NCBI GenBank assembly: GCA_002189035.1
Contig: NEEC01000007.1
Span: forward strand, 1,798,001 to 1,862,000
Direction of reading: 5' to 3'
Source of the DNA: Utricularia gibba
Lineage: Eukaryota; Plantae; Magnoliophyta
Length of the DNA stretch: 64,000 nucleotides
Position 1 is the stretch's first letter, and every line of letters starts with the position of its first letter. Positions 942 to 51,765 of the stretch are shown in pieces. A program made the position numbers and the translations under genes. The notes below the pieces were generated by a model, which was not told the origin of the DNA, searched no databases, and saw nothing but the letters and a program-made list of their open reading frames with translations.

Positions 942-3900
942 CTAATTTTCAATCTGCCACAAATTGCTCTCGTTGCTTTGCTGAACATCTTCAGCAGTTG
1001 GCACTCTGCTGCCCTTGCTGATGATCCCTTTTCCGAAGTACTCTGCAATCACAGAGAAGCCATCCTCGGAATTTTTAAGTTGTTGAAAGAAGTGTTTTTC
1101 ATTTCTGCTGTTCTGCTCTAGTTTTCTCTTCATTTCGGACACGCGTCTGTACTCGGGCTCGCACTCTGGGCATTCCTTTTCGTTGTCACCAAGACAATGT
1201 TGATGGAACGAGTGCATGCACATGAAATGAACTGCGGGAAGGTTCAGTGTGAAGGTACAACGTGTACACTTGCTCAGCTGGAAGATACTGGCATTTGTTC
1301 TTAGATCCTGAGTTTCTTTCCTCATGGAAATAGTCTGTTCCTGCAAATAAAACATCATTCAGTGTCATCCAAAAGGGATTGCGGGAAGAACGATAATGAA
1401 AAGCATGCCACGAGGAAATGCGTTGTAATGAACCTGGTATTTTTCAATGGCTACCCTGGAGTCCTCAATCATCCTCGTTTCCTGTTCTAGCTTTCTGGAA
1501 ATGTAATCCTTAATTACAGACACCGTGAGGCATGGATTTCTGGACAATATTTGAAGAACTATAATTGGAGGCAGAATGTCATCCCTCTCTATGTAACTCA
1601 AAACCTGTTTAACTTCTACCGAGCAATCTTCTCCAAGTTCACTGAAGTACTTCAATAGGTCTACCCAAAGCGAAGGGTCTCCACTAGTACCTGAGTCCCC
1701 GAGTCTCTTGCAGCAAGCAATTAAACCTTCATGGTCATGGGATTGCATGTAGCAGGCAATCACCTCCTTATATAGTTTCAACTTCTCATAAAGAAACAAT
1801 AGACCCTCTTTGAAGTGGTTGCTTTCACATAAAATAAGAGCGAGGTCAACATCATATAGAGGGTGCTCCTGGTCCGACGGCCATGCACTTTCAAGTAAAA
1901 GTAGAAGCTTTCGACACCGCTCTTGGAAACTTTTCTTCTCTGTGTTTAACAGAGCATCAACATAAGATTTTGTTTCTTCTCTATGAAATCTGTTTTCATC
2001 TTTTGTGGCATGCGAGAGTGAGAGCGAATCCAAGTCATTCGATAAATACAATTCTAGCAAAGTGTTATGTATTTCAACTTGAGCAGGAGAATCTTTCACT
2101 TTTTCTATGTACTTTTCAAGAAATTCCATAAGGGCCAGTGGACTATGGACAAATATATTGAGGAAATCAACTGGAGATGGCAGCATGGATAAAAACTGAC
2201 CATTCGATGAACCCATCCTGTCTGATTCCCCTTCAGTGCAAATCTTCATCAATAATTGAATTGTTTCAGCGGGCTTGTGTTCTATCAGAATTTTTCCATA
2301 CTCTTTCACAGTCACACCAGCTTGGCTAGGCTCAAGGCTATTTATGTAACGCAAAGCCTCGTCATACCTACCCAAGTCCTCGAGTAAAATCTTCAGGTAC
2401 CATTCATGCCTCCCTGACTTTTGGGCAACATAAATTGCATGTTCATGGTAATTGGCAGCCCGACAAACCCTTATTGCTGTTTCTACATCAAATTTGTGCT
2501 CCCCAACGCTGTCTTCACTTTTAATGAATACATTCAGCTTCTCCACATCTTTAAGCTTAGTATAGCAGTTGAGCAACAGAGTGGTGTGATCTTTGGAAGC
2601 ACATCCCTTTTCATGCAATTTTTCCAAGTACTGCGTTAGGTTGTGAATCCACTGTGCATCCAGAAACTTTTGTATCACATATGAAGGTTCAAGATGCCCA
2701 ATGGTATCCATGTACTGTTTCATTGCTTCATCATAAGATTGTTTGCTATATAAATGATCTCCATATTTCCTAAGCACCTCAGCAGTTGCTGCAGCATCAG
2801 CCTGCTGCCTTTGGACCAAATCAATAGCTATGGCATAGAGGTTCTTCTTGAAAAGCATATCTAATTTAGTTTCCATATCCTTCTCTGAAACAATAGTAAC
2901 AGACCTGTCAGCCATTATCAGAACTACACTACCCCATTCAGATACCATGTGCGAAACTTTTTCAACTGCAATACTGTGAGCTATTAAACGATTCTTCAAA
3001 TCATAAATGTTGAAGGTGTTCTTCTCAGTTCTCTGGTCAGCAATTACACAGATGAGGTATCCTCGAAACCATCCCACAAACTTCTTCTCTCCCTCAAAGG
3101 CCCAACATGGTCCTCTACCATCAACCTCATAAAAGAAAATGGCCTCAGGACGCCCGATGATCAATTCCTGCTTCCATAGTAATGCATATCAACTATTGCA
3201 TGAGCACACTAAATGAGTATACTGTGTACGGAGGATGATTAAAAACAATATAGCAGCAATCTTACCGAGTGATCACTCATCGCAACACACGAAATTTCAG
3301 AATCAATTTGATCCAGGATGTGACATTTAGGTGTATGGGCCTGTAAATTAAATAAGCTAACAGAGCCAGGTGTGACAGCAAATAGTTGAATTTCTTGACC
3401 ATCCACTCGAAAACCAAGCCCTGTAACAGCCGAACGTACTCCACCCGACTGACTGTTAACAACTTCAAGCTTGAAGCGCTTAATTCGTTCCCGGGCTATA
3501 TCACCATGAATGCAATAAATATGTCCATTATCAAGTCCAAGAGCAATCAGAATCACTGGCGGAGCTTCCTCAAGAACTACAAACGACGTGATCTGTATCG
3601 CAGCAAAAGAGGCTATTTGTTTTTCAAAGCTCAATATACTGAAAACATGGCGCCAGAATAAAAACTATACCTTAGCTTCCGGGAATTGGGTAGTGAATAT
3701 CCGCAAGATCTGAATACATTCTGGACCTGACGTACTTGATCCCTCTTCTTGCCTTCTGTCGAGGTCAAAAACCTTTAAACAAATAGAAGATTTCTTTTGT
3801 GCGATTTGCTCATCCTCTCCCACAGTCAATAACAAATTGCATTGCTGATTCAAACGCAAAGCCACAGGATCATATCACATAAGAAAACAGAATACTTTAA

Positions 3901-6375: not shown

Positions 6376-9300
6376 ATGTCTGCTTTCGTGGGCATCCTCG
6401 TCTCGGATCCCTGGCTCCAAACACAGTTTACTCAAGTGGAGCTTCGAAGACTCGAATCACGAGTAATGAATTGGATTTTTTTCGACTAATCAATCGATTG
6501 ATTCTATATTATGTTTTGATATCGTGAATATCCCATGTATGCAGTATCGCTCTGCGAGAAATGAATCAGAAATTGTGGTTCTTGGAGCCCTCCCTGGAAT
6601 TATGGTGCAGTTGAAGGGCATTAGTGGCACGCTTTCTGAGGAGGAGGTTAAGAGCATCTTGAGCGAGTCCTGTTCTGATTGGGACCGAGAAGTTGATTTT
6701 GAGTCCTTTCTTCGGGTTCCTTTTCTGTTCATACCTATACAAGACGTTGCACATACTTTGTTGTCTGAATGATTAGATTGCTCTGTTTTGTAATTGTGAA
6801 GGCTTATGTGGATGTACAAGCTAGGGTGCCTGCTAAAAAGGGTGACTCGAGAAGCAGATATTCGTTCCGCTCGACTTCATTCCTCAAAGCTTCGACGACA
6901 ACTCTTCGTCACACGATCAGCGAATCCGAGAAAACTTCTTATGTTTCCCACATCAACAGTTTCCTTGGAGAAGATCCTTTTTTGGAGAAGTATTTTCCTA
7001 TAGATCCCTCGGGGAATGCTCTCTTTGAGCTCGCTAAAGATGGTGTTCTTTTGTGGTAACTTGGAGTTCTTCATATTAACTAAATCGCGACTCCTGTATT
7101 CCATTCTTTATTCTCTCTGTGCCTGCAAGCTGGGTTGCATTTTGAAAGTTGATTCTATTTGCAGTAAACTCATCAATGTAGCTGTTCCTGGCACCATAGA
7201 TGAGAGGGCTATAAATGTGAAACAGCCATTGAATCCATGGGAAAGGAATGAGAACCACACCCTGTGTCTCAATTCTGCTAAGGCAATTGGATGTACTGTT
7301 GTTAACATTGGAACACAGGATCTGGTGGAAGGGAGAGTAAGCTACTGCGTTCTTTGTAATTCATCGGAGCAAACTCAATAGAACGCTAAACTGTGTTACT
7401 GAGTGTTAGTTATTTTGCAGCCCCATCTGATCCTTGGGTTGATATCTCAAATTGTCAAGGTAAATGCGGTGTTTCAAATTGATAACTTCCAAGTGTTACA
7501 TGCTTTTTAACGCTGGTGAAAAATTTCCACTTTTGGGTTTCTCAGATCCAGTTGCTAGCTGATATTAATCTGAACAAGACTCCAGAACTAGTTGAGCTAG
7601 TGGAGGATGACAAGGTAACAAAATACTGATTCTAAATTTTGAATATGTGGCATAAGAAACGCGCACTACTCATTGCATTTGATCACTTTTGAGTAAACGG
7701 AAAAGGGTTGTTGTGCACTGGAATGCGGATCTCAATGTCAAGAGTGACAAACTAACCATTTATGAGTAACTAGATGTCATCATAGATTTGGATTTCATTC
7801 CATTTGTTTTCTCTGATTACAGAGTGTTGAGGAGCTTATCAACTTACCACCAGAGAAAATTCTTCTCAAGTGGATGAACTTCCATCTTAAAAAAGCTGGA
7901 TACAAAAAAGTTGTGACGAATTTCTCATCTGATCTAAAGGTAAATTAATGAATGCAGACAACCCTCATTCACAATCTCCGAAGCTTCTTTTGTTGTTTTT
8001 CTGAGATGTCAACAAGCTGTGGTCGTTATTCAATAGTAAAAAGATGGTAGTCATGGTTCAGAAGCTATGAGTGTAATCAATCATATTTTCTGATATAATC
8101 TGATTTACTTTTCACTTCAGATATAACAAGTTCATGCAAACTGCAGGATGGGGAAGCATATGCTCACTTGTTGAATACTCTTGCCCCGGAATATGGCACA
8201 AAAGCAACACTGAATACAGATGATCCTGCTGAGAGAGCAAATTTGATTCTCCAACAAGCAGAGAAAATGGATTGCAACAGATACGTAACTCCAAATGACA
8301 TTGTTGAGGGCTCTACAAACCTGAATTTGGCATTCGTTGCACATATATTTCAACACAGGTTCTTTTATTCCAAGTTACTTACATGCAGTGACCATACCTT
8401 AAAATGCATGCTATACACTACAACACAAGCATTTCATTGAAATTTGGAGGACTCATTATTTGTTTTTATTTATTCTCAGAAATGGATTATCCGCCGAAAA
8501 CAAAACCAGTTCATTTGCTGAGATGATGACATATGACACTGAAACTTCTAGGGAGGAAAGATGTTTCCGGTTGTGGATCAACAGTCTGGGAATTGAATCC
8601 TTTGTCAATAACATATTTGAAGATGTTAGGACAGGGTGAGATTTAACATTATTTTCTGTGTCATAGAGTTGTACTTTGGCTTGATTTTGATTCACGACAA
8701 GTGCAGATGGGTTCTGTTAGAGCTGTTAGATAAAGTTTCTCCTGGAAGTGTAAACTGGAAGTTGGCAACAAAGCCTCCCATCCAGATGCCTTTCAGGAAG
8801 GTTGAGAACTGCAACCAAGTTATAAGTATCGGAAAGGAACTGAATTTCTCCCTTGTGAATGTTGCTGGCAATGACATTGTGCAGGGAAATAAGAAGCTTA
8901 TATTGGGTATGAATCTTCCTTGAATGTTTAACAGCTAGCTTTTCCAAGGATTCTATTGATCAGCATCTTCCCTCTCCTCTGTAGCTTTTCTATGGCAGTT
9001 AATGAGATTCACAATGCTCCAGTTGCTGAGGAACTTGCGATCTCATTCCCAGGGAAAGGAGATAACTGATGCTGATATTCTCCGTTGGGCAAACAACAAG
9101 GTCAAGAAATCCGGTAAAGATCACCAGATGGAAAGCTTCAAGGTTAGAAAAACAAAAAAATCAATCTCTTGATGAATCGATGGGATGTCATAATGGGATT
9201 GTAACGAACAGGATAAAAGTCTCTCCAGTGGGACATTCTTCCTTGAGCTTCTAAGTGCAGTGGAGCCGAGGGTCGTCAACTGGAGCCTTGTAACAGACGG

Positions 9301-9657
9301 CGAAACAGGTAGGTATACACTTTCACCAGAAAAATCATAACTTTAATCTTCTTCCTCATCAAAAAAACAAAAAATGCAGATGAGGATAAGAAGCTGAATG
9401 CAACTTACATCATAAGCGTTGCTCGAAAGCTGGGATGCGCGATCTTCCTGTTGCCTGAAGACATCATGGAGGTATCTGCTGTGACTGTCTGTAAGTGATT
9501 TGCTGCGCCAACTTTCAAAGTGTGGCAAAAATATGTTCCCTTGTACGGACAGGTGAATCAGAAGATGCTGCTCACCCTTACCGCAAGCATCATGTACTGG
9601 AGCCTGCAGAGGGGGACTGAAGAAGAGACTGAACCAGCGTCCCCTAGCAGTATATGA
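6376..9657 (+). CDS. FIM5: Fimbrin (actin-bundling protein, four CH domains), FIM5-like
   Basis: [24 protein letters not shown] start; [60 protein letters not shown] motifs; consistent GT-AG exon chain ending ...SPSSI-stop. Paralogue assignment is less certain than the family call. Confidence 0.93.
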
Positions 9658-10144
9658 GCGACTGCAGCGTAGTACATTGAAACTATAATTTGTATACAAT
9701 TTTATTAAAAAAAATACACAATAATCACGCCTACTTATTCAAGCATAGCTATTTGTTGATTTTTAAGTTCTAATTCCACATTAATAAATCTGAAAAATTA
9801 ATAATTTAAAAAAATTAAAGAGATTATTTATTTTAAATATTTAATTTTCATTATTTTATGTTATTTTATTTCAAAAGTACTCATACAAAATCAAGAAAAT
9901 TATTAAAAACGGGCTGTGGGTGCTGCTCTCTCTCCCGCCATTTTGCCACATGGGGATGTGCCCTTTCTGGAATTAGCAGTTTCATTTCACTGTCTCCGGT
10001 GGGTACCGGAGTGTGTAGCAGACGCTTTGGTGTTTTGTCTTCGTGGGTTCCTTGAGGGAGCTGTCCGCAACTTCTTGGTCTCTGAAGAAGGTTGAAATTT
10101 GAGTTCCTAGGGTTGGCGTTTCCCCCAATCAGGATTTGGCGAGA

Positions 10145-13100
10145 ATGTCGTCTTTCGGCAGGATTATCCGTCTTGAACTTGATAATTTCAAGTCTTACAG
10201 AGGGAAACAGACCATAGGCCCCTTCTACAGTTTTACAGCAATTATCGGGCCTAATGGTGCGGGAAAGTCCAACTTAATGGACGCCATAAGTTTTGTGCTT
10301 GGTGTTCGTACAGGGCAGCTCCGTGGAACAAATCTTCTGGACCTCATTTATGCCTATGACGACCGGGAAAAGCATCAAAGGGGACGCAGGGCTCATGTCA
10401 AGCTTGTATACCAGACGCCTGAGGGTTCCGAGATTAAGTTCACACGCTCCATACTACCTACTGGTGGTAGTGAGTACCGACTTGGTGATGCGAATGGGGA
10501 CCTGGTCGTGAACTGGGATGAGTACAATCGGAAGCTCAAATCTATTGGCATCCTTGTCAAAGTTCGGAATTTTCTCGTTTTTCAGGTGATTAATTCTATT
10601 TTTGGTTGCCAAGCTCTGGGAAGTTACAGGAAAATGGATATGCCTTTAATATGGGAAAATGAATTTCAATCACTAACATAACCTAGTTACCTGAGTTTAC
10701 TGGTTTGAGAGAAGGCATTAGGATAAGATTATTAAAATAATTGTAGAATCCTTTCTTATCCATCCAATGGGTGCTGTATCAATTTCTAAGAAACTTCTGT
10801 TATTTAATGTAGCTCGCTTTTCGAATATTCACCCAGTTTAGACATAAACGAATGTCTCCTGTCGCCAAGACCAGTTCACGTGGCCAATTGTGCTTACTTG
10901 ATAAGAAGAATCCAGAATGTTTAAATTTTGATCTGGTTTGTTGGATTTTTGTCATCGAGTTTTTTTTATTCCAGGGAGATGTTGAGTCTATTGCCTCGAA
11001 AAATCCCAAGGAACTGACAGACCTTGTAGAACAAATTTCTGGCTCCGAAGAGTATAAGAGAAGATATGAAGAATTACAAGTACAAAAAGGCATGGCTGAT
11101 GAAAAAGCAGTGCTTGCTCATCAAAAAAAGAAAACCATTTCAGCTGAGAGAAAACAGAAGAAATTGCAGATGGAGGAAGCTGAAAGGCATCGCAAGTTGC
11201 AAGAGGAACTGGTATCTATGATGTTTTGTCTTTTAGTGCGTAATGTATGCACTAAGTTTAGTGTGATTCCGTAATTTATTTTGAAGGTTCAAGTTTATTG
11301 CTTTTACCATTTGATGTGCTATTCTTCATATGTCCAACTAACATAGAATTTGTATAGAAAAAATGGCTTCTGCTTGTTCTATTATTCAGCTGGATTCACC
11401 TTGACATCTCAACAGAAGTTGGTAATTCTTCATTCTAAATTCTGTGTTCTCTTTGATATTCCCATGCAGAAATCTTTGAAACAGGAACATGCATTATGGC
11501 AACTGCTGAATATAGAGAATGATATTGACAAGGCTAACGAGGACCGAGGTGTTGAAGATGACAGCTTGAAACAGATTCTTGCTGAACTGGAGGATTATGA
11601 GAGTGAGTTAAAGAGCAAGAAAAAAGAACAAGACGGGCATTTGAAAGAGATGGAAAAGTGCCAAAAGAGGATAGTTGAGAAACAAAAGAAAGTCGATAAT
11701 GTATATGTCCTTTTTCTATTTTCTGGGTTTTACCTATCTCCTAGTTTTCGATATGCTTTTGGTGATTGTAGGCCAGAAAAATGCAATACTGTCTGCCCAT
11801 GGATTGCCTACACCTTATGTTGTTTATATTCTAGCTGTTCTTCTAGCATAAAGAAGCGTGTGTGAAGTATTCCTTAATGCTAGTTCATTTCCTTTGATGA
11901 CAGCAACAATTGGAGCTTGTAAAGCAGAGAGAGGAGATATCACGTTTAAGTTCTAAAATAAAAAGTACTGAGAAGGAGTATGGTAAGAGAAAGGAAGAAA
12001 GAGAGAGACATTTACTCGAGGTTAAAAAACTTGAGAATGACTTGTTAGGCGTGACCAAGCAACTTCAAAGCTTACGGGAAAAAAGTGAGGATGCTGGTGG
12101 AAAGATTCAGTTGGTTGACAGTGAATTGGCAACATATCACCAGATGTAAGCAATACTCATATAATTGTTTTCTCAATGTTGCCAATTCCAGCGAACTTTA
12201 GTGATTACATAAGAGCCTTTTTTGTAGTAAAGAGGAGGCTGGGATGAAAACAGCTAAATTGAAGGATGAGAAAGAGGTTCTGGACAGGCAACAGAGTGCT
12301 GATATTGAAGCCAAAAAAAATTTAGAAGAAAATATTCAGCAGTTGAGAAACCGAGTGGATGAACTGAAGTTACAAAAGGAGCAAATGGAAGATAGACAAA
12401 AAAAGAATGTTCTGGCAGTTGAAAAGCATAAAGCAGATATTGAGCGTGCCAAAGAGGAACAGAGGAAATTGAAGGAGAAGCTTGCAGAGTCTAGGTAAGT
12501 TGGAATCTACTTCCCTTTCACTTATTTTGTGACACCAAGATTTTTTTTTTGTTTTTGTTTGAATACTTAATGCACGTTTTCAGGCATAAGCATGAAAATC
12601 TGAAAGCAAGGATTAGTGAAATTGATAGCCAGCTACGTGAAATGCGGGCTGACAGACATGAAAGCGAGAGAGACAAAAAGTTATCTCATACAGTTGACAC
12701 ACTTAAACGCCTGTTCCCAGGTGTTCATGGCCGCATGACTGATCTCTGTAGGCCTACTCAGAATAAGTATAATCTTGCTGTTACTGTTGCCATGGGGAAA
12801 TTCATGGATGCAGTGGTTGTAGAGGATGAGCAAACAGGAAAGGAATGCATCAAGGTAAACGAAGATTTTCAATATCAACTTGTGCCAACAATTTAGGAGT
12901 ATTTGGCTACATCACAGCTTCTCTCACGTCTTATCCTTTTTTTTTTAATTTTCTTTCTGGCATAGCATGCCACGAGCATTTATATATTTCTTTAACAGGA
13001 GTGTGGAATTATTTCATCCGCTGTTTTCTTTTCTATGGACGTCCTTTTAATTCCTTTTGAAGCTTACATGTATTCTCAATGGTTTATTCTTGTGCATGTT

Positions 13101-16100
13101 GCTTTTTTATTCTTTTTTTGTTTTATCGTGTTAGTTCTGATGTAACATGTTATCGTCTTTGTCTCTCAAAATGTAGTCTTGGTTGCGTATTTTGATTTTT
13201 GTGCAAAATTGAAAAATTGTTGCCTACCATTATGATAATTTATGTGCACGCTTACAGTATTTGAAAGAGCAAAGGCTTCCTCCTCAAACATTTATACCAC
13301 TTCTCTCTGTGCGTGTGCGACCTGTTGCAGAGAACTTGCGCAACTTAGGTGGCACTGCAAAGCTTGTTTTTGATGTTATACTGTATCCTTCCATAGCTGA
13401 GATGTTTAATCACAATCAGTTCTTATGCACATGCTGTGCCCCTTCTCCTATCCATCCTCCTTTGAGATTTCTTGAATTTTGTGGAGCAGAATAGGTGTCT
13501 TATACGTGGTTATAAGGTTGGTTAATCCGTAAAATTGTTGAAGCCTACTTTTTTTATAATTATGATTTTTTTATTGATTACTTATAAACTTAGGACAGGT
13601 TAATGAAATGGCTTCAATAAAACAAGTACACCACTGTAATGCCTTAAAGGCTGTACTGTATTATAAACATCTAACTCATACTAGAAATCTCAAAGTCTGA
13701 CCTCAGTTAACCGAGTGCCACAAAGAATCCATCTATGTAGCTGCAAAGATCAAACTTCCTGAACTTCTGTAGATTTGATCGTGTGCTGGAAAATGCTATC
13801 TTGTTTGCTGTCGGGAATACATTAGTTTGTGATGATCTAGAAGAAGCCAAACATCTTAGCTGGAGCGGGCAGAGATTTAAAGGTGCAATATTTTATATCC
13901 TTGTCACCTTGAGCTATCGCTATTCATCTAATTTATGTTTTCTGGATTTACTTTGCAGTGGTCACAACCGATGGGATCTTATTGACCAAGTCAGGTACAA
14001 TGACTGGTGGCACTAGTGGAGGCATGGAGGCACGTTCACACAAATGGACTGACAAAAAAGTTGAAGGTCATCTAATTTAAATCCTTCAACATGCTAGCAG
14101 TGTATGCGCTGTTGTTCAACCTAGTTGATTTTTTTCCTTGGCTCTCAGGACTCAAGGAAAAGAAGGAACAATTGGAGTCTGATATGGAAAAGCTTGGATC
14201 TATAAGGGACTTGCAACTTAAGGAATCTGAAGCATCTGGGAAAATCAGTGGCCTTGAGAAGAAGATTCAGTATGCGGAAATTGAGAAGGTATATATGGAT
14301 AACTAATCTTTCAAGTAATCAGTATAGAAGGCATATATAAATTCATTATGCGGAAATCAGTGGCCAAGGGTTTACTAATGTTGCAAGTTGATTGGAGCTT
14401 TAGTTACATAATATATATATATATATATGCGAATGTGCAATGCAAAAACCGAATGGACAAAATTGCACTGAAAATTACTAACGCTACTTGCAGAAAAACG
14501 GAAACTAATAATCTGGGAGCCATGCTGCTTGATATTCTTGATGCATTATAGATGCTTTATATGCTTAAGGAACATTCGTTTTGCAGAAAAGTATTGAGGA
14601 TAAACTTGAAAAATTGAATGTGGAGAAGCTTGAAGATGAAATTGCTCGTCTCATGCCTGAACTTGAAAAGGTGCTTTTGTCTTTATTTGTTGACACAAAA
14701 GACTTCAATTTGTTTATTATTTTCCCTTTCCCCTCATTCCAGCTTGAGAAAATAATTGATGCAAGGGCAGGGAAGATCCAATCTCTTGGGCAGAGGATTG
14801 ATGAGATTGTTGAGATAATATACAAGAAATTCAGTGACTCTGTTAGGGTTAAAAACATTCGTGAATATGAAGCAATCAATCTCAAGGCCATAGAGCAGAT
14901 GGCTGCGGAAAGAGTAAACTTACATAATCAACAATCAAAGCTCAAATACCAGTATGAAAGTTTGTCACCTTTTTTCTACTATCATTCTTGCACTTATCAT
15001 TCCAAATGAAGTTTTGTAGTATCTGAATGTTTTCCTTGAGGCTGCCTCGTATCTGATGGGAAGTGTTTACGCATATATCATGCATCTATGCCATAGCTAA
15101 TCGTCTGAAGATTTGGATTTTGAAAATTTGCTTACTTGAGAATTTTGTATTGAATTCCCAGCCACTGGAGCTGTGTTTTCCATTTCTTAGAGTTGTTTGC
15201 ATCTTTGCACAATTTTGTCTAGGTTGGAGTATGAGAACAAGCGTGATGCAGTTTCACGTATTGCAAAATTGGAATCAACACTTGGTAGCTTGCGGAGTGC
15301 ATTGCAGGATGCTGAAAAAAAGAAAAGGGAATTAATCTCTGCTATAAAGAATGCGAATTCTGGGGTTGAAGATCTGAAGAATGAAGTAACTGGTGCAATT
15401 ATTACTTCCTCTTTCTACATTCTTTATATGCAATACGCTCCTCATGATCAGCATGCCGTTGGTTGGGGTTAATTACCTGCATTGCCATTTCTTGGAGATA
15501 ATTATGCGCGTTGAGGCAAAAATAACTGTCTGAAAGATTATAATATTAAAAATGATATAACTGCAGCCGGCCACATGATGTCATAATGCTCGGAGTTGGG
15601 AATCTGCATAATAGATATTTCTGCTTCTTCACTGTCGCATAGCTAGTACCATGATCTTTGCCGCTTTTTTTTTGTTCTTAATGTCTTTAGTCATGCTTTT
15701 GTGTCTCCATCATCTCTATATTGCACAAACAAGTTTCACCTTCTTTGTTTCTTAGATTGGAAAACCAAGGCAGATGAATGCGAAAACAACATCCAGGACT
15801 TGAGGAAAAAGATATCGTCTGCTACATCTAATATTACGAAGCACAATCGCCATATTAAGTCGAAGGTTGGTCTCAGAATCTTCTCAAAATGAAATTCGTT
15901 TACCTAGGTCATTCCAAATACGTTTACCTAAATGATTTCAAGAGGTGTTTACCTGTTCTGTTTTTTCTTTTTCAATAATTTTCAGGAGGCATTGATAGAC
16001 CAGCTGACATTGCAGAAACAAGAAATATTAGAGAAATGTGAAGTAGAACAGATACACATCCCTACTATGGGGGATGATGACATGGACACAGGAGAATCAA

Positions 16101-25834: not shown

Positions 25835-28608
25835 TCAGTCCGACCCAGGGAAACCTTTTATTACATCTCTAAGAGCATGGTAATGGCTATCACACTTGTG
25901 ATCTGAAATAAGGTTGCTGGAAAGGAGTATTCTGGTAGGGAGTTCACCAGGTCGGCTCTTCAACATGGTGAAATATTCAACGGCAGGTATGTCTGAATTT
26001 TCAGCCTCAAAGCGTCTCTGCAAGTAGTACACAGTCCCTGGTACAAACAGATCATCATCTACCTTCTTTGCGACCTTCCCTTGGTCACTATTCCAACTGA
26101 CCTCACGGTCAGAAGCTTCATCTACAGGAAAATATGCAAATTGAAAACATATATAACTTGGAAACACTGCGTCTAGTAGATAAGGAGAACTAGGTAGTAA
26201 CCGTAGAGTTTCGACTGCCCTCTAATCTTGGTATATTCAGCAAGTTTCCCAGATATGTCTTGTATGGATGAAACAACTTGCTTAGCACTGGAAACAAGCT
26301 CAAGGATGCCCTTCCAATCTTCTCTACTAAAGACACTTACCCTGCAAGATCATTTAAACATTCAAGACATGGGATAGCTCACGAGCCAATCTGAAAGTAC
26401 GGGATTGAGATGCTCAAAAAATGAATATTTCCATTACCAATCTGTTCCAACAATTTCATTCCGCAGTCTTTTTACAGAAGCAGCGCTGAGTCTTGGGACT
26501 ATGTCCCCCTACATGAAAAGGTAATATAAGATTAACAGTTTGGTGCCATCGACTTTGAAAATGATATATATACTAGAGAAGCATGCCTGCATCACCACTG
26601 TAGTCACAAAATCAGAACAGCTTTCAGCAAGCTCCTTAGAAACACAAGGAGGTGTCCCATATGTAATCGCAGTGACAACATCAGGACTGAATCCAAGCTC
26701 TATGGATGACTTCCTCCTAAGCATGATAGCAAGCAAGGCAGCAATCGCACCTCCAAGAGAGTGGCCAACAAGCCTCAATCTAAAACCCTGCCAAATCATT
26801 AGTCTAGCAAACACTGTGTTATGAAATGATGAGACAGGATAAAATTGACAGTGGAATGAAGAGATTGTTAAACAAACCTTGTGTTTGTCCAGGTACCACC
26901 TGATGGTATCTATCTCATAGGTGAGAAACCAGCGAGATGCCTCTGCGGTTCCAAAATGGGTGGAATAGCCTTCAAAAGTGACTTCTTCATGGCCAGAGGA
27001 TACAATATCTGTAATAATGTCGTAGACATTTTGTGTTCCACGGATACAAAGAATGACAAGTTTCTTCCGTCTATCGATGCCAATATAATAACCAGGCCTC
27101 AACACACTTGATCGTCTTGTGAACTTCACTACATCTTTTACTCGAAGCATGCTACTCCTAGCGACACCAGCAGCATTATCCCTATAAGAGCCTCTTGCAA
27201 GTTCTAAATGGTATATAAGTTCATGAACCTAAAACACCAAAAGACAATATGTTTAGATGTTATTTAAAATAAGAACAATGCGTGCCTTCACAGAAAAAGA
27301 AGATAAAGGTGGACAGAATTGATTTGCCTACTCAAAAATATGGAACTGACGAAGATCAAAGTGCGTGGCAATTCATCTCAAATTGCTAACTATTTTACAA
27401 ACTCATAACATTTTTATGAGACAGGCCACGCATATAGTTAACTAGGCTTCAAGTTCTAAACATTACCTACATTGGAAAACAAGATAATCCTCATGGTATG
27501 AGAAACTCAATTTTAAATCATCTGATCATTTGCACCTTAGTTTCAAGTACTACAGTTATCACGAAAATGCTGAAAGGACAATTCTCCATTTTTTTTCTGT
27601 GGTATCTGGCAACGTTGCTCATAAACTTCTGCAATGCTCATCAGTTGCAAGGGTTTATAAAGGTAATTAGGCACTCACTAATGATTCCGAGGTGATGACT
27701 TCCCCCTTCACATCATCCACGGAACTCTCAGAAGCTTGCCTAAGATACAAGAGATATAATCCTATTGTAAGGTCACTCAGAGTCCAATCCTGAAACCCAA
27801 GTTTGCTCCTTTGTATGCTGGCAAATATTTCAGCAACCGATCTATCTGTAGGCGGGAGCTTGCTCGATACTCCACTTCCTAAAAACATTGACTCTCTGAA
27901 TAAGTTTTTTGCTGAACCTAAGTGAAAGTCAATAGTAAAGCTACTAGATATTTCTCAAGCTACGCCATTATAAGCATCCACTCTTTGAGCTCAAAAGGAA
28001 ACTAACTCAAAGAAATCCGCATCCTCAAGCGTCAGTAATAAAAACATCCCAAACGTCCCGATTTCAGGGTAAAACATGACTTTCCAAAGAAGAAGCAGCT
28101 AACAAAAGTCACAACATGAAGTTGGAGAGAAACTAAACCTGCGGGAAGCACCCACTTGTACAACTGCAAAGCGGGTTCAAGAGCTTTAGAAAGCCAAGTA
28201 ATTTCAGGCTTCCACCTGTAGCTATAAAGGCCCGAATCTTCGTTATCCACGACAGGGGTAACACTGCCGGGAATGTCTTCCAAGCTCTTCTCTTCCTTCG
28301 AATTGGACCACTTCAATCTACTCAAAAAAGTGTGCTCGTACTTCTTACATAAGTCTTTGGACAATCTCAAGCTTCGTCGAAAATCTGCGAACAAAAAGCA
28401 AGCTTAGTTGCGCGATGGATGATCATACGTACACAAGGAAACAGAAGTATAAAAGACCGACCCATTTTCAAGAATCATTTTTCTGCCCCACCACCATGCA
28501 ACCGATCAAAGAAGACCAGAAATGTATGCACAGCGACAGATTCATGGTGAAGGCAGCCTTGATCAGAACCCGCTTGAAATAGTGGTAGCAACCGCCGCCG
28601 TTCGCCAT
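25835..28608 (-). CDS. Class 3 lipase (mono/diacylglycerol lipase-like alpha/beta hydrolase)
   Basis: IRGTQNVYDIITD, GHSLGG nucleophile motif, YGTPPCVS, GDIVPRLS, DLFVPGTVYYL. The 5' exon is uncertain: candidate ATG at 28608, firm coding from 28385. Confidence 0.88.
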
Positions 28609-29266
28609 TCCGAAGATGTTCAACGGTGGCCCAAAATCTCAATTAACGGATGGGCACAAGCTCACCCAATCACTCGGCCCGTCTAAAATACACGGCCCAG
28701 TAACCGTTTGTTAAAATAACTGTTAGAATATATTAATTTGATCGTATTTAACCCAATAATTTTCATGAATGATTCACAACCTACAACAATTTAAACATCA
28801 TTTAATTACAGTTTTTTAAACATTGGACTCAAGTTATTTTGAATTGAGCCTGAATGGGGCATATCTTTTTTTAAATAATATGTATAAATGCAAATAAAAC
28901 ATTAAAAATACAAGAGATTATCAAAATGGATGATGATGAAAGTTTTACTGGATTATTTTGGTCTTTATCTCTATTCCCATGATTGTGATTTTTGAATTGA
29001 TTTCATTATCTTTTAAATAACTTCTTGATATTAAAGAATATTTTTTTGGAAATTATTTGATTCACATGATATGGTGGATAAAAAGAAAAATCAATTGATT
29101 GTAGCTTTAAACTGGCACACAAATTAATTGCCAAAGGAAGAAAAAGGTCTTCGCGAAATTGAAAAAATAATATTAAGAATTTTCAAGAGGGAAAAGTTTA
29201 CAATTCTTGCTACGTTAAAAAAATCAAAGAATGAATTCAGAAGCTGAAAAGATCAGCTTTGATTCC

Positions 29267-30582
29267 TCAGGAGAAGGCGGTTGGCAGGGCGGTGCAGTTG
29301 AGAGCTTGGAGGGTGGGTATGATGAGGCTTTGCTCGATGCGGACGGCGATCTCCTGTGTGAAGTGAATGCCGTCCCAGAACATGTGGCGTTCGGGATGGG
29401 AGCATGCGGGCACTCCGGCGCTGCCGCAGAATCTGTTGCTGCTGTAGTTGTACGCGCCTCCGATCCCGCAGCAGGTTCTCAGGGCGGTGGCTGCGTGTCC
29501 CTCTGCGCATGAACCAATTCAATGGTAAATAAATGATGAGCATCTATGCTGACAACAGATCCAGAATGAATGCGAGGGCTTGCCTTGATTCAGTCTGTCG
29601 AGGATTTGGAGGAAGCCCTCGTCGAAGGCACCGTAGATGAGGGTGACGTTGGGAACTCCCTGCCCAACTCGTTGATGGCTTGCCGGAGGTAGTTGTTTTT
29701 CATGGTGATGAGCCTGTTGACGCTGCTGAGGCATCCCAGGCGATCGTAGGCGGTGGGGTCGCCGGAGGGCATCGCGGTCAGGATGTAGGGGAAGCAACCC
29801 AGAGGGGCGCTGCCCGGGATGACGATGAGCCTTGCTCCCATCCCGATGAGTTGCTGCGAGTAGGGAGATTATATCAGTATGAAGGAATGGCCACAACTGG
29901 TATTTTTTGTGTGACGAAAAAGGGATTGATTAGTTACCCTGGTGGCCTGGATCTGTTCTCTGGTGATGGGGCCGACGTAAGACTGCGCTTCCTGAAGAGT
30001 CTTTCCCTGCGTGAGGGCGTACCCGATGTCGTTGGCCTCGAGGTCTCCCAGCAGCACCAGCGAATTGGCGAGCCTGTCAGCGATGCAGTCGGAGGAGTTT
30101 GCGCCGCCGCAGACGGACCGGAGGTGGGTTTGGAACCATTCGAGTTGAGTGGCGAGGGAAGTGGCGTAGCGTGGGATCCGGATGCCTCTCCGCGAGAAGA
30201 AGCCGTGGTCCATCACCGGACTCCTGGCGACCGAGAAGATGACGCCGTTGCTGGAGTTGGCCCTTTCGGAGAGAGAAGGAACGATATCCGGGAAGCCGAA
30301 GTCGAAAGCCGCGAAGTCGAAGTCGACGAGGCCGTCAGACCATCGCCCGTTGGGGGTGCCGGGGTACGTCCGCCCGTAGGGTGCACGTGTGGGCGGGAGT
30401 GAATCCTGAATGAGGACGGAGTTTCCGACGTCGGTGGCGCCGTCCCCGAAGTGGTAGAGGTAGGGAAATGGGCACACGGGATTGCCACCAGTCCGTGAAG
30501 AAGCAACCGCAGCGCTACTACAAGTACTCACAGCAACGATCGCGAAGAGGAGAAGGAGCTGAGAGGAGAAACCCATCATCAT
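29267..30582 (-). pseudogene. GDSL/SGNH esterase-like gene, left copy, with a 1-nt deletion frameshift in exon 2
   Basis: Reads gagttcccaac versus gagttccccaac in the right copy (29651-29653); frame changes from REFPNVTL to REFPTSPSST. Could be a consensus error. Confidence 0.7.
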
Positions 30583-30654
30583 CTGAACTGATCTGATCTG
30601 ATCTGCCGTTGGTTGTTGAGGTTGAATGATGCAGTGTTCATGAAATGGTCGAAC

Positions 30655-30977
30655 ATATATAGGCATGGAGGACTCGAAGAAGTCAACTTTCGTTTCATGG
30701 ACCGGTGACTGTCTTTTTCCATGTGTTTCTCTATCCAACCGCGTTAGAATTTGGACAAAAATACCTAATCTATTCATCCCAACTTGTAACCCAGTTGCTA
30801 GATTCAACCCATTGACAAATGTGAATGAGCATTCAATGCGAGGATTTGGTCATCTTCTTGGTCTTCAGACGCGCCCAAGCTCCGGCCGTGTTTCGGGTTC
30901 CTACACAGACACGGAGAATAGAACAGGTCCATGTCCATGCCCTTCCAGGAAAAGCCTTTCTATGGAATACTATAAAT
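30655..30977. promoter_or_regulatory. Divergent promoter spacer with TATA-like boxes: TATATAT (minus strand, 30661-30655) and TATAAAT (plus strand, 30971-30977)
   Basis: Each box starts 30 nt before its repeat-arm boundary and upstream of a short leader and ATG. Confidence 0.6.
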
Positions 30978-31054
30978 TCCACGCACCCCCAGTTCATCTC
31001 CATCATTCAACCTCAACAACCAACGGCAGATCAGATCAGATCAGATCAGTTCAG

Positions 31055-32371
31055 ATGATGATGGGTTTCTCCTCTCAGCTCCTTCTCCTCTTCGCGATCG
31101 TTGCTGTGAGTACTTGTAGTAGCGCTGCGGTTGCTTCTTCACGGACTGGTGGCAATCCCGTGTGCCCATTTCCCTACCTCTACCACTTCGGGGACGGCGC
31201 CACCGACGTCGGAAACTCCGTCCTCATTCAGGATTCACTCCCGCCCACACGTGCACCCTACGGGCGGACGTACCCCGGCACCCCCAACGGGCGATGGTCT
31301 GACGGCCTCGTCGACTTCGACTTCGCGGCTTTCGACTTCGGCTTCCCGGATATCGTTCCTTCTCTCTCCGAAAGGGCCAACTCCAGCAACGGCGTCATCT
31401 TCTCGGTCGCCAGGAGTCCGGTGATGGACCACGGCTTCTTCTCGCGGAGAGGCATCCGGATCCCACGCTACGCCACTTCCCTCGCCACTCAACTCGAATG
31501 GTTCCAAACCCACCTCCGGTCCGTCTGCGGCGGCGCAAACTCCTCCGACTGCATCGCTGACAGGCTCGCCAATTCGCTGGTGCTGCTGGGAGACCTCGAG
31601 GCCAACGACATCGGGTACGCCCTCACGCAGGGAAAGACTCTTCAGGAAGCGCAGTCTTACGTCGGCCCCATCACCAGAGAACAGATCCAGGCCACCAGGG
31701 TAACTAATCAATCCCTTTTTCGTCACACAAAAAATACCAGTTGTGGCCATTCCTTCATACTGATATAATCTCCCTACTCGCAGCAACTCATCGGGATGGG
31801 AGCAAGGCTCATCGTCATCCCGGGCAGCGCCCCTCTGGGTTGCTTCCCCTACATCCTGACCGCGATGCCCTCCGGCGACCCCACCGCCTACGATCGCCTG
31901 GGATGCCTCAGCAGCGTCAACAGGCTCATCACCATGAAAAACAACTACCTCCGGCAAGCCATCAACGAGTTGGGCAGGGAGTTCCCCAACGTCACCCTCA
32001 TCTACGGTGCCTTCGACGAGGGCTTCCTCCAAATCCTCGACAGATTGAATCAAGGCAAGCCCTCGCATTCATTCTCGACCTGTTGTCGGCAGAGATGCTC
32101 ATCATTTATTTACCATTGAATTGGTTCATGCGCAGAGGGACACGCAGCCACCGCCCTGAGAACCTGCTGCGGGATCGGAGGCGCGTACAACTACAGCAGC
32201 AACAGATTCTGCGGCAGCGCCGGAGTGCCCGCATGCTCCCATCCCGAACGCCACATGTTCTGGGACGGCATTCACTTCACACAGGAGATCGCCGTCCGCA
32301 TCGAGCAGAGCCTCATCATACCCACCCTCCAAGCCCTCAACTGCACAGCCCTGCCAACCGCATTCTCCTGA
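31055..32371 (+). CDS. Secreted GDSL/SGNH esterase-like protein (acetylajmalan/sinapine esterase-like clade), 383 aa; exons 31055-31699, 31784-32054, 32136-32371
   Basis: Signal peptide; block I FGDGATDVGN, PYGRTYPGTPNGRWSDG, block III GDLEAND, CCGIGGAYNY, block V WDGIHFTQ; intron 2 is GC-AG. Confidence 0.92.
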
Positions 32372-32717
32372 GGAATCACATCATTTTTTGTCCTTCTCTT
32401 TAACCATTCTTTCATTAGTTCTAATGTAAAATGACGTGCTTAATGGAATGCATTCATTCACATGTTCGAGTTGCCCTGTTCCCATTCCAAAGAAACCGAG
32501 ACTGCCGCCACATCACGATGTTCTGAAAAAACCACTATTCTGTGGGCTACTTGCAGAGCGAAGACATGTCTAATCCAGGTCTAGATCCATAACCCCAAAG
32601 AAAAAGATGCACACAAAGTCCATCACGAGGGGTAGCAGCAGAAGCGATGTTCGTACGAAAACCGAAAACGATAAACCAACTCGGAGTTGGGGGCGAACCG
32701 GTCGGAATTCAGTGAAG

Positions 32718-33207
32718 TCAATACCGGTCGAAGGAAGGTGGCCGGCCTCCCCTTCTTGGGCGGTCGTAGGGGCCAGGTCTCTCCCTGTAGTTTCTGCCTT
32801 CGTATCTTGGAGGTCCACCGGCGCTGCCGCGGGCGCCTCCTTCACGGTCGTAACCCCTCTCCTTGCCATATCCATTCTGTGGGTATCCTTCTGGGGCGCC
32901 GTACCTGTCATCCGGAAAACGGTCTCCGGGCGGCGGGTACCTGAACAATCATAAGAATTGATATGGTGGATAAGGTGTGGGGGTTGGCTCGGCCATGAGA
33001 ATTAAGCATGTACCTGTCGTTGAAATATCGGTCTCGGTTTCCAAATCGATCATCTCTGCTTTCGAAGCGATCCCTGTCGCCATAACGGCCCCTGTCGAAT
33101 CGGTCGTTTACATATCTCTCACGATCATCCAGGTAGCGATCCCCATGGTTACCAGGCCCTCCGAACCTGGGGCGTGGGGGGGAGAAAGGGCGACCGCGAC
33201 CACGACC

Positions 33208-33239
<32 letters not shown>

Positions 33240-35836
33240 TGCCAGCAGATGGGCAATCTCTTGCCCAGTGACCGGACCGACCACATCTGAAGCATTCATC
33301 CTGCCCAACAGATCTATTCCCACCAGCATAACTGCTCCTCACTCCTGCAGAATAATTACTGAAACCATGCCCAGGCTCTTCACCTCCCATCTTGGGCTCA
33401 GCCTTGTTAACGGAGATGACCCGATCACCAAACTCCCGACCGTGCATCTCACTGATGGCATCCTCCATGGCCCTCCGATCAGCAAAAGTCAAGAAACCAA
33501 ATCCACGAGGACGCCCAGTATTCCTTTCCAGCATAATCTATACCACAGTGTGTATCAGAAAACCATACAGACAAAAACAAAGACAAGATTCAAGCATCTT
33601 TCGAAGACTGGTGTCCCACAGATTTCAAGCAACTCTAATCAGTTCCTTGAATTCACAGGCTGCACACTGCTTTCTATTTCAAACAGCTTACATTTCTCGT
33701 CATTCCGCAGCAGTCAGATTACATAATATGTAATAAATCCCTCGTTAGGAATGGAATGGGAGCAGTTCTCACATGCACATAAGAACAGATGCCAAAAAAA
33801 TGCAGATACCTTCATCTCACACACAAAAAAAGACGTAATCAATCAGATCATGTACGATTTACTGAAACCTCACAACCAACAGAGCAAAACCCCCACCAAC
33901 AGATCACACAGCCAAGAAAGGAGAGGGCTAGGAAACAAAACAGCTATGATCTCCCCATTTGATATCATTCATTTTCCATTAACCAGCCGCTGTCAGTCTC
34001 CTACACACAACGGATCCCAGGCGAAGTTCTGCCATCTGAAGTCACAAAAGACTAGACGGAAGATGCTATCAAAGAGTATCATCGACATGCATGATGAAAA
34101 GTTACACTAGAGGTCATTACTTGTGCTTTTTTCTTCATATATTGTAGTGAAATATACAAGGCACAGATTGCAACTGAAGCTATAGTGTTATGACAAGTTT
34201 TTCAAGACAAGACGGACTATTGGAAGGTCAATACATATTTTAGTATGTGAAATTGTTGCTGTAATCAACACAACCTATTTTATTGAGATGTTCGCTTCCT
34301 TCTTCGACACTACAAGGCCAAAACCAGTATCAAGAAAGACAGCAACTTATACATGATAGAAACTGAACATGTCTTTCAAAATCAATTGGCCTTCAACACA
34401 AAAAACTGGAAACCTTGACTTACTCAGTCCAAATACTTGTTCTTTACTGCATTGACGCAACAATCACACAACATTGATTTTTAATGTTGTACCTCAGCTC
34501 TGATTTCGTCAATACAGATGGTAATCAACTGAAATTCTGAACCTCAGCCCGAAGTAACTCACAGTTAAGATGCTGTACCTCAGTAACTGAATGCATTGCA
34601 CAAAAAGAGTGCATTATGCAAAAAGCCACCATGAAATTTCCAAGCAGTGCAATGAAGACTCAGCTGATATTCAAATACATAAACGCCGATTATGCCAATC
34701 TTTCCACAAACTAGTGATGTCAAAAACATACCCCAGTTCCTTCCATTCCCCGTGCACACATTACAACTGCACCAGAATCTGGCTTAAACATAATTCAATC
34801 CTGGAAACCAATGCTGGGAACGCAATCTGATTTGGCGGACAAACCATATTTATAACACAAATGCTGGTAATGTTACACATGCTGGCCAGGATCAGTGATA
34901 CACCAATCAGTTTAACAAATTTTTTTCAGGAGAAGCTTGCAGCCACGTTGCTTAAACACTTCCTCACTAACCTACTTTACAAATGCTCAGAAAAGCAACC
35001 CACTGTCATTTCAACTGAAAACATCAAGGTTGAGGTGAGAGAGTGTGTGTCCAATCAGCGAAAGTTGAATTCAATGACTCATGGCACTATCGTACAAGCC
35101 AGAATGCATACACTAGCCGATGACTCATCTTAAGTAAACCCAGAATCGACTGCAACGGAAACTATGGTCCAACTAAAGCTGAAAAAATCCACAGAGAAAC
35201 TGGCAGAAAAAGACACAGGAGCGGCAAATTCACCTATGGGGGTAGAATCACAAAGCCCTTTAGATGTATAATTTTTAAAAAGCTAAGAATTTATCTCAAG
35301 GATGGAACAACAGAATCTGTGCTTCCGTGTTCCTAGAACAATGGATCAATAATACTCATCAACATATGATACAACGATTTATAATCGATGAAGAAATGCA
35401 GTAGATAGTTAATTTTAGGTGAAAATTCTTGATAATACAAATTAAGCTAAATCCCATTCGCAGAGAAAATCTCCATATGCATGCACTGAATCTCAAAGAG
35501 ACCCATTCTACAACCCATAAAGAATAGATATCACCGCAACGCTACAACTCACATGTCTGGAATAAGTTAGAAAGCCCGCATCGAGAAAATAAGAAAGCAA
35601 ATTTAACACAAGTAGAGACAACACTAGAAACAAGCATAAAACTCCACTTGAAAGTCACACAACCCAGATATGCATCGTAAATCCATTAAAACGAATATGA
35701 AGAAAAAGAACAACTAAATCTTCACCTGACTGTCAATAACTTTCCCGAAACGGCTAAACGCGTTTTCCAGCTGCCGCTCTGTGACGTCCGCCGCTAATCC
35801 ACCGACAAATATGCGATTTTCCTGCTCCGCCGCCAT
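32718..35836 (-). CDS. RZ-1 type glycine-rich RNA-binding protein (RRM, CCHC zinc knuckle, Gly/RD-rich tail); exons 35836-35726, 33537-33014, 32940-32718
   Basis: [17 protein letters not shown]1 [22 protein letters not shown]; closest to recalled RZ-1B/RZ-1C. Confidence 0.93.
33217..33237. repeat. (GCC)7 trinucleotide repeat encoding poly-Gly of the RZ-1 protein
   Basis: Direct reading of the sequence. Confidence 0.9.
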
Positions 35837-37950: not shown

Positions 37951-43322
<5,372 letters not shown>

Positions 43323-44691
43323 CACATCAATCCAAATTTCACTCAAACTCCATAACAAACGGTATACCTCACATGACCTTGCGATATTCCAAAACTTCCA
43401 GTCATCAAGATTCACACCCCCAAGAACCAAGAGCAGTCCTGGAAGCACCAAAAGACAACTATTACTAAAAAACCAGAACAGGAAAACGCCAAACCAGTGG
43501 GCGCAGTATGCAATGTATGACTTACCCTGCTACAAGGAATTAACAGCTCCCACTGATAAGAAGCAAGGGAGTGTGAATTCCAGCCGGCGATGAACCGATA
43601 ACAAGGGCTTTCGATTTGGGGATTAGACCATATCGAGAAATGCGAACTCCCCAGTACCTTCCTGAATCAGCAGAGCCTCAGCACTTCGGATTTAGATTGC
43701 TCGGTGGTGATGGGCGGCCCTTCCGGATTTGGGCTATCCCACAGAAAGATCCGCCAACAGAAAAACAACCAACTAATCTTATAAACCCAAAAAAAATAAA
43801 AAATTGGATCTAAAAAATTGTTTGATACTCAATATAATTAAAAATAATATTATTAAAATAAAAATATTATTTTAATTTCAAAATGTATTTTGTATGTAAA
43901 AATTATATTATATTGATTAATATAAGGATTATCTTATCACATATATTTAAAAATCGTTGTACAATAATTCCTCTTCACTATAAACATATTTTTCAACTTT
44001 AATAATCTTATTTATGAATTACACATTTTTATATATTATATAAAATCTCATATATTATGAGAATATTATTATATTTATTGAAATTTTTTTTTGAAAAAGA
44101 TTTTAAATATTTACTGAATAATGTGATATTTATTGTAACTCTCCAAACATATATTATAATTAAAATAATATAAAATAAATTCAATAATAATTTAAAAAGT
44201 GTTACTATATAAAACAAAAGTATACCACCACTTTTGAATAAAATCATATTACATCTTATCTTTATAAGCCACATTTTTTATTTGTGCTAAAAATTTGTAT
44301 TTTATAAATTTATAATTCAATAATTATTTTTTTATTTTAAAAAATAATAAAATGATTTTTAGTGAAAAAAATTCGAACTCTTAATTTTCTTGTTATACAA
44401 GAATACAATCAAATAATTCAATACGTATAATATTAAATATTTATTGTGTCACGTATTTAATACGTGTTCCTAAATTATTTTCGTAATACCATCCTTATCT
44501 TTTTATGAGATGTATTACAAATTTGGACATGATAAAGTGTGAAAAAAATTGGTTACCGTCAATTAAAAATTTTTGCGTAAATGAAAATGAGAGATTTGTC
44601 AATTTTATGAGATGGAAAACCGTCAATAAATAGTAGGACACAGTGCTGCTTGAATTCTGGACAACTACAGCTTCCTCTTCTGCTCTTCACG

Positions 44692-50100: not shown

Positions 50101-51765
50101 ATGGCGGTGCAGTTGTTGTACGCGGCGGCGCCCAACAGTCAGTGTTCATGCTTAGCGTTAACCATCAAGTCATCGTCGATTGTTCCAAGCAATTCCGACC
50201 CAGAGCCCCTGGAGATTCGCAAATGTACGCGCAGGGACCTGTCAAGGTTTTTGAGAACGGATGCCGCCATTCGAGCCATAGAGAAAAAGTCGAATTCATC
50301 AAAGCACACCAACCTCTGGCCAAGGGCTGTCTTGGAATCTCTTCACGATGCCATTCAAGATAACCGCTGGGAGACTGCTCTTAAGGTTTTTTATTCTGTA
50401 CTTTCAGACTTCTTGAAATTTATTGGAAGATATAGCAACATAAAAGGGAGCAAAAGTCATCCTGTGTCTTTATAATGTGCTATCCAGAGTATAGAGATGA
50501 TATAATAGTGTGGTTTAAGTTTCTATTATTTTTATCAGAAGTGAAAAGTTGGAGAGGATTGTGGGTCATTTTTATGTATTGGATTTAGATTCTAGGAAGA
50601 TGAAGCAAATGGAATATTACTGATTGGTCTGTTGCTCTTTCGGTCACTTTCTTTTCACGTTTGTTTGTAGATATTTGGTCTTCTAAGGAGGCAACAATGG
50701 TATAAGCCTAGATGCCAAACTTATACAAAGCTACTGATGATGCTTGGCAAATGTCGGCAGCCAAATCAGGCTAGCTTGCTGTTTGAAACCATGCGTTTTG
50801 ATGGGCTTCAACCAACAGTCGACGCCTACACTGCACTTGTGAGTGCCTATTCTTCCAGTGGCCTCTTGCATAAGGCAATACAAATTATTGCTGAGATGAA
50901 GTCAACACATGATTGCAAGCCTGATACTTTCACTTTCACAATCCTTATCAGGTCATGCCTTAAATTCAAGTGCTTTGATGTGATTGGACTAATTTTAAAG
51001 GAGATGTCAGATTTGGGAATTGAGTGTAGTAACGTAACCTACAATATTTTGATTGAAGGATATGGAAAAGCCAGGCGATTTGAAATGATGGAGGACTCAT
51101 TAATCAACATGATTCAAAGTGGAAATTGTTATCCAGATATTTTTACTTTCAACTCCACAGTAGGGGCTTATGGCAGATGTGGGAGGATTGCAGAAATGGA
51201 AAAATGGTTTGAGGAGTTTCAGTTGATGGGATTGAATCCTGATGTCATGACGTATAATATTCTTATTAAAGCGTATGGGAGCTGTGGGATGCACAATAAA
51301 ATGATGTCTGTATTTGATTTTATGAAAAAGCGCTTTATTTCACCATCTTTAGTTACCTATAATTGTATTATTGACGCATTTGGGAAGGCTGGTGACATCA
51401 AGAAGATGGATGATATGTTTCTGGAAATGAAGGATAGAAGTCTGAAGCCTAATTCAATTACATATACATCTCTTATCGGTGCATACAGCAAAGCAGGCCT
51501 GTTGGAAAAGATCAGTTCAGTTTTGAGGCAAGTGGATAATTCTAATGTAGTTCTTGATACGCCTTTCTTCAACTGTGTGATAAATGCTTATGGCAATGCT
51601 GGTCAGTTGGAAAGGATGATGGAGTTATTCACTGCATTGAAGGGAAGTGGATGCAAACCAGATGAGGCAACTTATGCTGCAATAGCTCAAGCTTATCGTG
51701 CTCATGGAATGACTGAATCTGCTCAGGATTTTGAGCATTATTTGATCCATCCGAAGAACACTTGA
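50101..51765 (+). CDS. P-class PPR protein, At3g53170-like; 2 exons (intron about 50386-50670)
   Basis: LSRFLRTDAAIRAIEKK...LWPRAVLESL...RWETALK|IFGLLRRQQWY followed by tandem 35-aa PPR motifs (VTYNILIEGYGKA, DTPFFNCVINAYG). Confidence 0.93.

Follow-up and report, generated by a model that had tools for sequence, protein, structure and literature searches.

A head-to-head pair of serine-less GDSL-like genes in Utricularia gibba with a stepped identity between its arms, suggestive of partial gene conversion

Layout of the inverted GDSL-like gene pair

We analyzed a 64,000-nt stretch of Utricularia gibba DNA (assembly GCA_002189035.1, contig NEEC01000007.1, forward-strand positions 1,798,001 to 1,862,000), referred to here as the window and numbered from its first nucleotide, which contains a 3.1-kb palindrome formed by two GDSL-like genes, of a plant gene type with a secreted, lipase-like product. 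Gapped alignment placed the left arm, with gene copy L, at 29260–30631 on the minus strand and the right arm, with gene copy R, at 31001–32378 on the plus strand, the two being 1372 and 1378 nt in length. These inverted arms surround a unique spacer of 369 nt (30632–31000, with no strand assigned), delimited by the arm alignment and by comparison of its halves, from which both genes are transcribed outward in a head-to-head arrangement, so that the spacer accommodates two divergent promoters. The repeat finder reported three collinear inverted segments, i.e., 955 nt at 100%, 432 nt at 94% and 52 nt at 96% identity, while the gapped alignment of the arms consists of three ungapped blocks of 391, 937 and 44 nt. 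Large arms of ~10 kb or more, which characterize the classical sex-chromosome class of palindromes, are absent here; with arms of 1.37 kb the structure is a miniature, single-gene version. Inside the 64-kb window no further GDSL copy was present.

Homology between the arms stops 7 nt past the stop codon (the stop codon of R is at 32369–32371 and the arm ends at 32378). An initial annotation, made from the sequence alone, had put the end of homology at the same place and had described the 3′ untranslated regions (UTRs) and the spacer as unrelated; accordingly, neither the two spacer halves nor the two 3′ flanks showed significant similarity when compared with each other. On each side of the spacer a TATA box (CTATATAT and CTATAAAT) ends ~21 nt before the arm homology starts. 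The two promoters also have in common the 8-mer GGTCCATG, positioned ~65–70 nt upstream in both. The chance of a collinear 8-mer is roughly 0.02, and the element could be a remnant of old homology or a cis-element common to both promoters.

The exons of the two copies were searched one at a time, and joined exon coordinates served for counts of length, stops and codon positions. According to the splice model, copy R has an intact frame of 383 codons, encoded by exons at 31055–31699, 31784–32054 and 32136–32368 on the plus strand. Its intron 1 (31700–31783, 84 nt) has GT-AG borders and its intron 2 (32055–32135, 81 nt) has GC-AG borders. The spliced model is collinear with a Castilleja homolog (P0007), also over the 14 residues that separate the QIL/QVL and CCG motifs. 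Copy L, which was delimited by the repeat finder and the alignment, has exon 1 at 30582–29938, intron 1 at 29937–29854, exon 2 at 29853–29584, intron 2 at 29583–29503, exon 3 at 29502–29270 and the stop codon at 29269–29267 on the minus strand.

As assembled, copy L is frameshifted. Exon 2 of R contains a run of four cytosines (31984–31987, plus strand), whereas its partner in L (29651–29653, GGG, which is CCC on the coding strand) is one base shorter. Copy L reads up to GREFP and then continues out of frame until a stop 19 codons on that leaves ~8 nt of exon 2, so that the Asp-x-x-His block of L sits behind the frameshift. The reading of R at the C-run, EFPNV, is the version conserved in homologs. 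Both arms had been handled as intact genes in the initial annotation, which holds for R, with its 383 open codons, but not for L, with its 1-nt frameshift in exon 2. Based on the assembled sequence, L would be either a very young pseudogene or a gene with a consensus error in its C-run; a homopolymer consensus error is quite possible as the source of the 1-nt difference. Because the premature stop lies so close to the last exon junction, a transcript of L would probably escape nonsense-mediated decay, and the protein predicted from it would be truncated before the Asp-x-x-His block.

Distribution of differences between the arms

Exactly nine substitutions distinguish the arms in the gapped alignment, and all of them fall in the outermost alignment block, at 32045–32362 of R. 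They lie in an outer, older-looking segment of 334 nt (32045–32378 on the plus strand, with the L partner at 29593–29260), where divergence is 0.063 at neutral sites and about 3% (2.7%) in raw terms. Four of the nine are in intron 2 (32076, 32079, 32088 and 32092) and the other five are exonic and synonymous without exception (TTG/CTG, CAG/CAA, GCC/GCT, ACA/ACC and GCA/GCC). This is the count, the division between intron and exons, and the set of codon pairs given in the initial annotation. The four intronic changes are packed into 17 nt (32076–32092) and may represent one complex mutation or a short patch. The outer exons carry five changes per 55.7 synonymous sites against none at 190 non-synonymous sites, and these counts indicate purifying selection on both copies during the divergence of this part.

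The remainder of the arms, 31001–32044 in R coordinates, is free of substitutions, as previously annotated, and this tract includes the whole of intron 1. Given that intron 1 is identical as well, protein-level selection cannot explain the identity of the inner part. However, the inner part is not fully identical, for it contains two indels that the initial annotation had overlooked. One of them is in the 5′ UTR, where a pentanucleotide microsatellite, (AGATC)n, is longer by one unit (5 nt) in R (31028–31049, plus strand; L partner 30588–30604), and the other is the C4/C3 difference in exon 2. Between these two indels lies a perfectly identical block of 937 nt (31050–31986, plus strand; L partner 29651–30587), which would be the minimal extent of a conversion tract. 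The presence of two indels inside the inner part means that the arms were assembled as separate sequences and not as copies of one consensus.

To compare the inner and outer parts, sites were weighted by synonymous degeneracy, which gave 361 inner and 144 outer neutral-equivalent sites. Differences numbered 0/361 and 9/144, respectively, and the outer divergence of 0.063 became 0.065 after Jukes-Cantor correction. At the outer rate 22.6 inner substitutions would be expected and none was observed (Poisson P(0) = 1.5e-10), with an upper bound for inner divergence at ~13% of the outer value. Nine uniformly placed substitutions would leave a substitution-free gap of 75.8% or more of the arm with a probability of 2.9e-5, rising to 1.4e-3 when the four clustered changes of intron 2 are taken as one event. 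With the indels also scored as differences, the corresponding probability for the 937-nt gap is 4e-5 to 1e-3. Over the inner part the arms are thus much more alike than a duplication of this age would predict, with P between 1.5e-10 and 1.4e-3 depending on the test. If the tract ends at the indels, the 44 and 57 nt outside it that are also free of substitutions would be identical by chance with P of ~0.3 and ~0.2, respectively, at 2.7% divergence. On these sequence comparisons, the mosaic is the footprint that gene conversion is expected to leave where its tract falls within an older duplicate, and a single duplication followed by uniform divergence cannot yield it.

Protein family, base composition and genomic surroundings

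The GDSL-family domain PF00657 was detected on all full-length homologs, in agreement with membership of the gene in this family by sequence. When exons were scanned separately, exon 2 alone scored 22.2 bits against PF00657 (E 1.7e-4), slightly under the whole-protein cut-off of 23.6. Block I reads FGDGATDVGN in both copies, so that the nucleophile Ser of the GDS motif is missing, and the same Ser-to-Gly replacement was seen in 21/21 homologs in which block I was located. Block V with its Asp-x-x-His is present as FWDGIHFT in exon 3 of both copies and is conserved in homologs. On the basis of these motifs, we assign the gene to the serine-less (FGDG) GDSL subfamily of Lamiales. A protein search with exon 1 returned nearest proteins exclusively from Lamiales, with best identities of 64–67% over the aligned parts, from the genera Rehmannia, Striga, Castilleja, Phtheirospermum, Paulownia, Phlomoides and Buddleja. 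On the phylogenetic tree a long branch (0.71) leads to the window protein, whose closest neighbor is a fragment from a read assembly (P0017). The homologs have five exons, and exon 1 of the window gene (31055–31699) is equivalent to their exons 1–3, with counterparts at 10019–10990 in Castilleja (locus L001), 10070–11156 in Rehmannia (L002) and 10031–11092 in Striga (L003); two 5′ introns have therefore been lost. Castilleja copies at another locus, L004, are without a different intron (10816/10817 contiguous).

The base composition of the gene makes it a strong local outlier. GC content at third codon positions (GC3) is 0.75–0.84 in the gene versus 0.37–0.51 in five neighboring genes, and 0.29–0.37 in the homologs from Castilleja, Rehmannia and Striga. 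GC1 and GC2 are likewise elevated, while the introns have 39–47% GC, and GC3 does not differ between the inner and outer parts. The excess is almost entirely due to cytosine on the coding strand, which ends 78/87 twofold Y-ending codons and 115/205 fourfold codons; guanine ends 18/31 twofold R-ending codons, similar to the neighboring genes. Horizontal transfer from a GC3-rich donor was considered and ruled out, given that all homologs are Lamiales proteins with the same FGDG motif.

The surroundings of the palindrome are gene-dense and ordinary. Neighboring genes at 1368–3164, 26512–28394, 32911–33534, 37954–43451 and 50737–51762 encode VPS11, a class-3 lipase, a splicing-factor-like protein with RRM and CCHC zinc knuckle, a demethylase-like protein with JmjN, JmjC and C2H2 domains, and a PPR protein, respectively. 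No tRNAs or non-coding RNAs were found in the window. The zinc-knuckle gene is transcribed towards the palindrome and, judging by this orientation, read-through from it could in principle give a hairpin RNA of both arms. We also considered a fold-back or missed-adapter chimera as the origin of the inverted structure, which was ruled out by the unique spacer and the different flanking genes.

Conversion between the arms, its alternatives and related systems

We regard it as fairly probable that the mosaic records a recent conversion tract of ~0.94–1.04 kb, with the other arm as partner, superimposed on an inverted duplicate of greater age; mechanism, donor and timing are what we infer. A head-to-head duplication of a serine-less GDSL-like gene would have come first, and its outer part would by now have reached ~6.5% neutral divergence, with purifying selection acting on both copies throughout. 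Later, a non-crossover recombination between the arms on the same chromatid would have copied ~0.94–1.04 kb of one arm onto the other, from the 5′ UTR across exon 1 and intron 1 through most of exon 2, and would have erased all substitutions there. This could have proceeded either by gene conversion that followed a break within or close to the spacer, or by a switch of template within one molecule at the short-spacer inverted repeat. The putative tract would adjoin the spacer and have its far end inside exon 2, between the C-run at 31984–31987 and the first substitution at 32045. The differences in the microsatellite and the C-run would then be younger than the conversion, or else would mark the tract edges. 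We favor exchange between the arms because it needs only the two partners that are present and because the tract adjoins the spacer, a position that would be expected for repair of a central break or for template switching in a short-spacer inverted repeat. The initial annotation had also proposed an older duplication homogenized by conversion between its arms; the mosaic and its significance agree with that proposal, with the other arm as the putative donor.

Several points weigh against conversion from the other arm. The GC3 excess is specific to C on the coding strand and is weak and ambiguous evidence for long-term GC-biased conversion; since a process acting equally on both strands would be expected to raise G to the same degree as C, we do not count it as support, and selection for C-ending codons, or a bias towards them linked to transcription, is no less likely an explanation. 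Exact look-ups with seven sense, antisense and alternative-frame open reading frames (ORFs) from both arms found no match in the collection, and the matches to exon 1 in the protein search were no more than 67% identical, with neither the gene itself nor a near-identical sequence among them. Among the Castilleja, Rehmannia and Striga loci, no orthologous locus in another species was found. Moreover, a third paralog, rather than the other arm, may have supplied the outer patch.

In this last case, the duplication would be young, with identical 1.37-kb arms, and the outer 334 nt of one arm would have been overwritten later by ectopic conversion from a third, slightly diverged paralog elsewhere in the genome, so that the diverged patch, and not the identical tract, would be what was converted. 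Synonymous-only differences fit two functional paralogs equally well, and the lack of residual homology past the arms is as would be seen for a young duplication with sharp breakpoints. However, this scenario requires a third partner, and no other copy exists in the 64-kb window; its tract must also either stop no more than 16 nt from where the arm homology ends or replace the flank. We consider it unlikely, albeit the most serious competitor. Mosaic identity might alternatively be produced without any conversion, if after a single duplication the nine substitutions were clustered at the 3′ side by chance or by heterogeneity of mutation rate. The packing of four of the nine within 17 nt of intron 2, perhaps as one complex event, is in line with this idea. 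Nevertheless, with the differences counted as six events the max-gap probability is still 1.4e-3, that of all of them falling in the outer part under neutral weights is 5e-4, and the inner part, with 2.5 times more neutral sites and a whole intron, has zero substitutions, which leaves this explanation highly improbable.

The remaining concern is the assembly, i.e., that the inner identity, the 1-nt frameshift, or both arose from consensus calling or polishing of a repeat. A one-base difference in the length of a C-run is a typical leftover error of long-read consensus, and the exact ORF look-ups provided no independent match. On the other hand, the arms are located between different unique genes (Lipase_3 on the left, RRM/zinc knuckle on the right), and single long reads would cover the 3.1-kb structure. 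The identical part is precisely the one next to the spacer, which reads anchored there would resolve, and with two indels inside the tract the arms were not collapsed to one consensus. An artefact of this kind is improbable in our view, and for the palindrome structure itself an assembly artefact is unlikely.

Inverted pairs of the same subfamily occur in Castilleja foliolosa. Locus L001 has a head-to-head pair with arms at 6738–8475 and 9872–11821, whose proteins are 87% identical and whose nucleotide identity is flat at 0.86–0.91 (about 89%). Locus L004 has a tail-to-tail pair (arms at about 9465–11404 and 13505–15395) and is a mosaic, with identity of 0.88–0.91 in the outer parts and 0.965–0.975 in 600 nt nearer the center. 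These pairs resemble the window pair in belonging to the serine-less FGDG subfamily and in their inverted arrangement, and L004 also in its higher identity near the center. In contrast to the window pair, their arms are 82–98% identical and reach into the promoters and 3′ flanks, and their spacers measure 1.4–2.1 kb. A tblastx comparison of the window with the Castilleja, Rehmannia and Striga loci matched the GDSL genes only and revealed no synteny of the flanks. The Castilleja pairs and the window pair probably arose independently, unless rearrangement has gone too far for this to be judged. Taken together, they suggest that inverted duplication with partial homogenization recurs in this GDSL subfamily.

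Conversion between palindrome arms has been established for mammals and willow, where palindromes of sex chromosomes have been described on the human Y (P1–P8), the mammalian X and the Salix purpurea W (PMC8600007, PMC8981503, PMC7023750). As in the window, those palindromes have gene-bearing inverted arms around a unique spacer and a near-100% identity that is best explained by intrachromatid conversion, and a mutation that inactivates one arm can, at a further conversion, either be repaired or be passed on to the other arm. They differ in that their arms extend from 10 kb to 1.5 Mb, compared to the length of a single gene body here. Furthermore, the window locus lies in ordinary, gene-dense surroundings in which nothing points to a non-recombining region, and the putative conversion extends over part of the arm only.

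Concerted evolution of linked duplicates by partial gene conversion is also known from the primate gamma-globin pair and from GC-rich Hsp70 duplicates. The window pair has in common with them a sharp boundary between homogenized and diverged sequence inside the unit, homology limited to the gene body, and purifying selection on both copies. Those duplicates are mostly direct repeats, whereas the window pair is inverted; crossing-over between its arms would invert the spacer instead of deleting or adding a copy as in direct repeats. That the spacer may flip through such crossing-over, as the initial annotation had raised, is reasonable in principle.

Conversion-derived mosaic identity and gene-bearing palindromes are already well documented, and the locus adds no new mechanism. 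It offers a clean, PCR-sized case of partial homogenization of inverted gene copies in an autosomal region of a plant, with, as assembled, a fresh inactivating change in L at the edge of the tract, and could be a tractable locus for measuring rates of conversion and spacer inversion in a plant whose genome is small. More interesting than the single locus is the pattern of inverted GDSL pairs that recur both here and in Castilleja, which calls for a genome-wide count. Speculatively, and with little confidence, the pair might belong to a series of small, single-gene GDSL palindromes within a very compact, deletion-prone genome. Because recombination between inverted copies inverts DNA and does not delete it, inverted duplicates would persist preferentially in such a genome, and correction between the arms would preserve a fast-evolving family of secreted pseudo-enzymes. 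If conversion between the arms is the correct reading, the pair would be an autosomal miniature of the self-repair of the Y chromosome, in which the frameshifted L copy would have been caught before its rescue or its spread.

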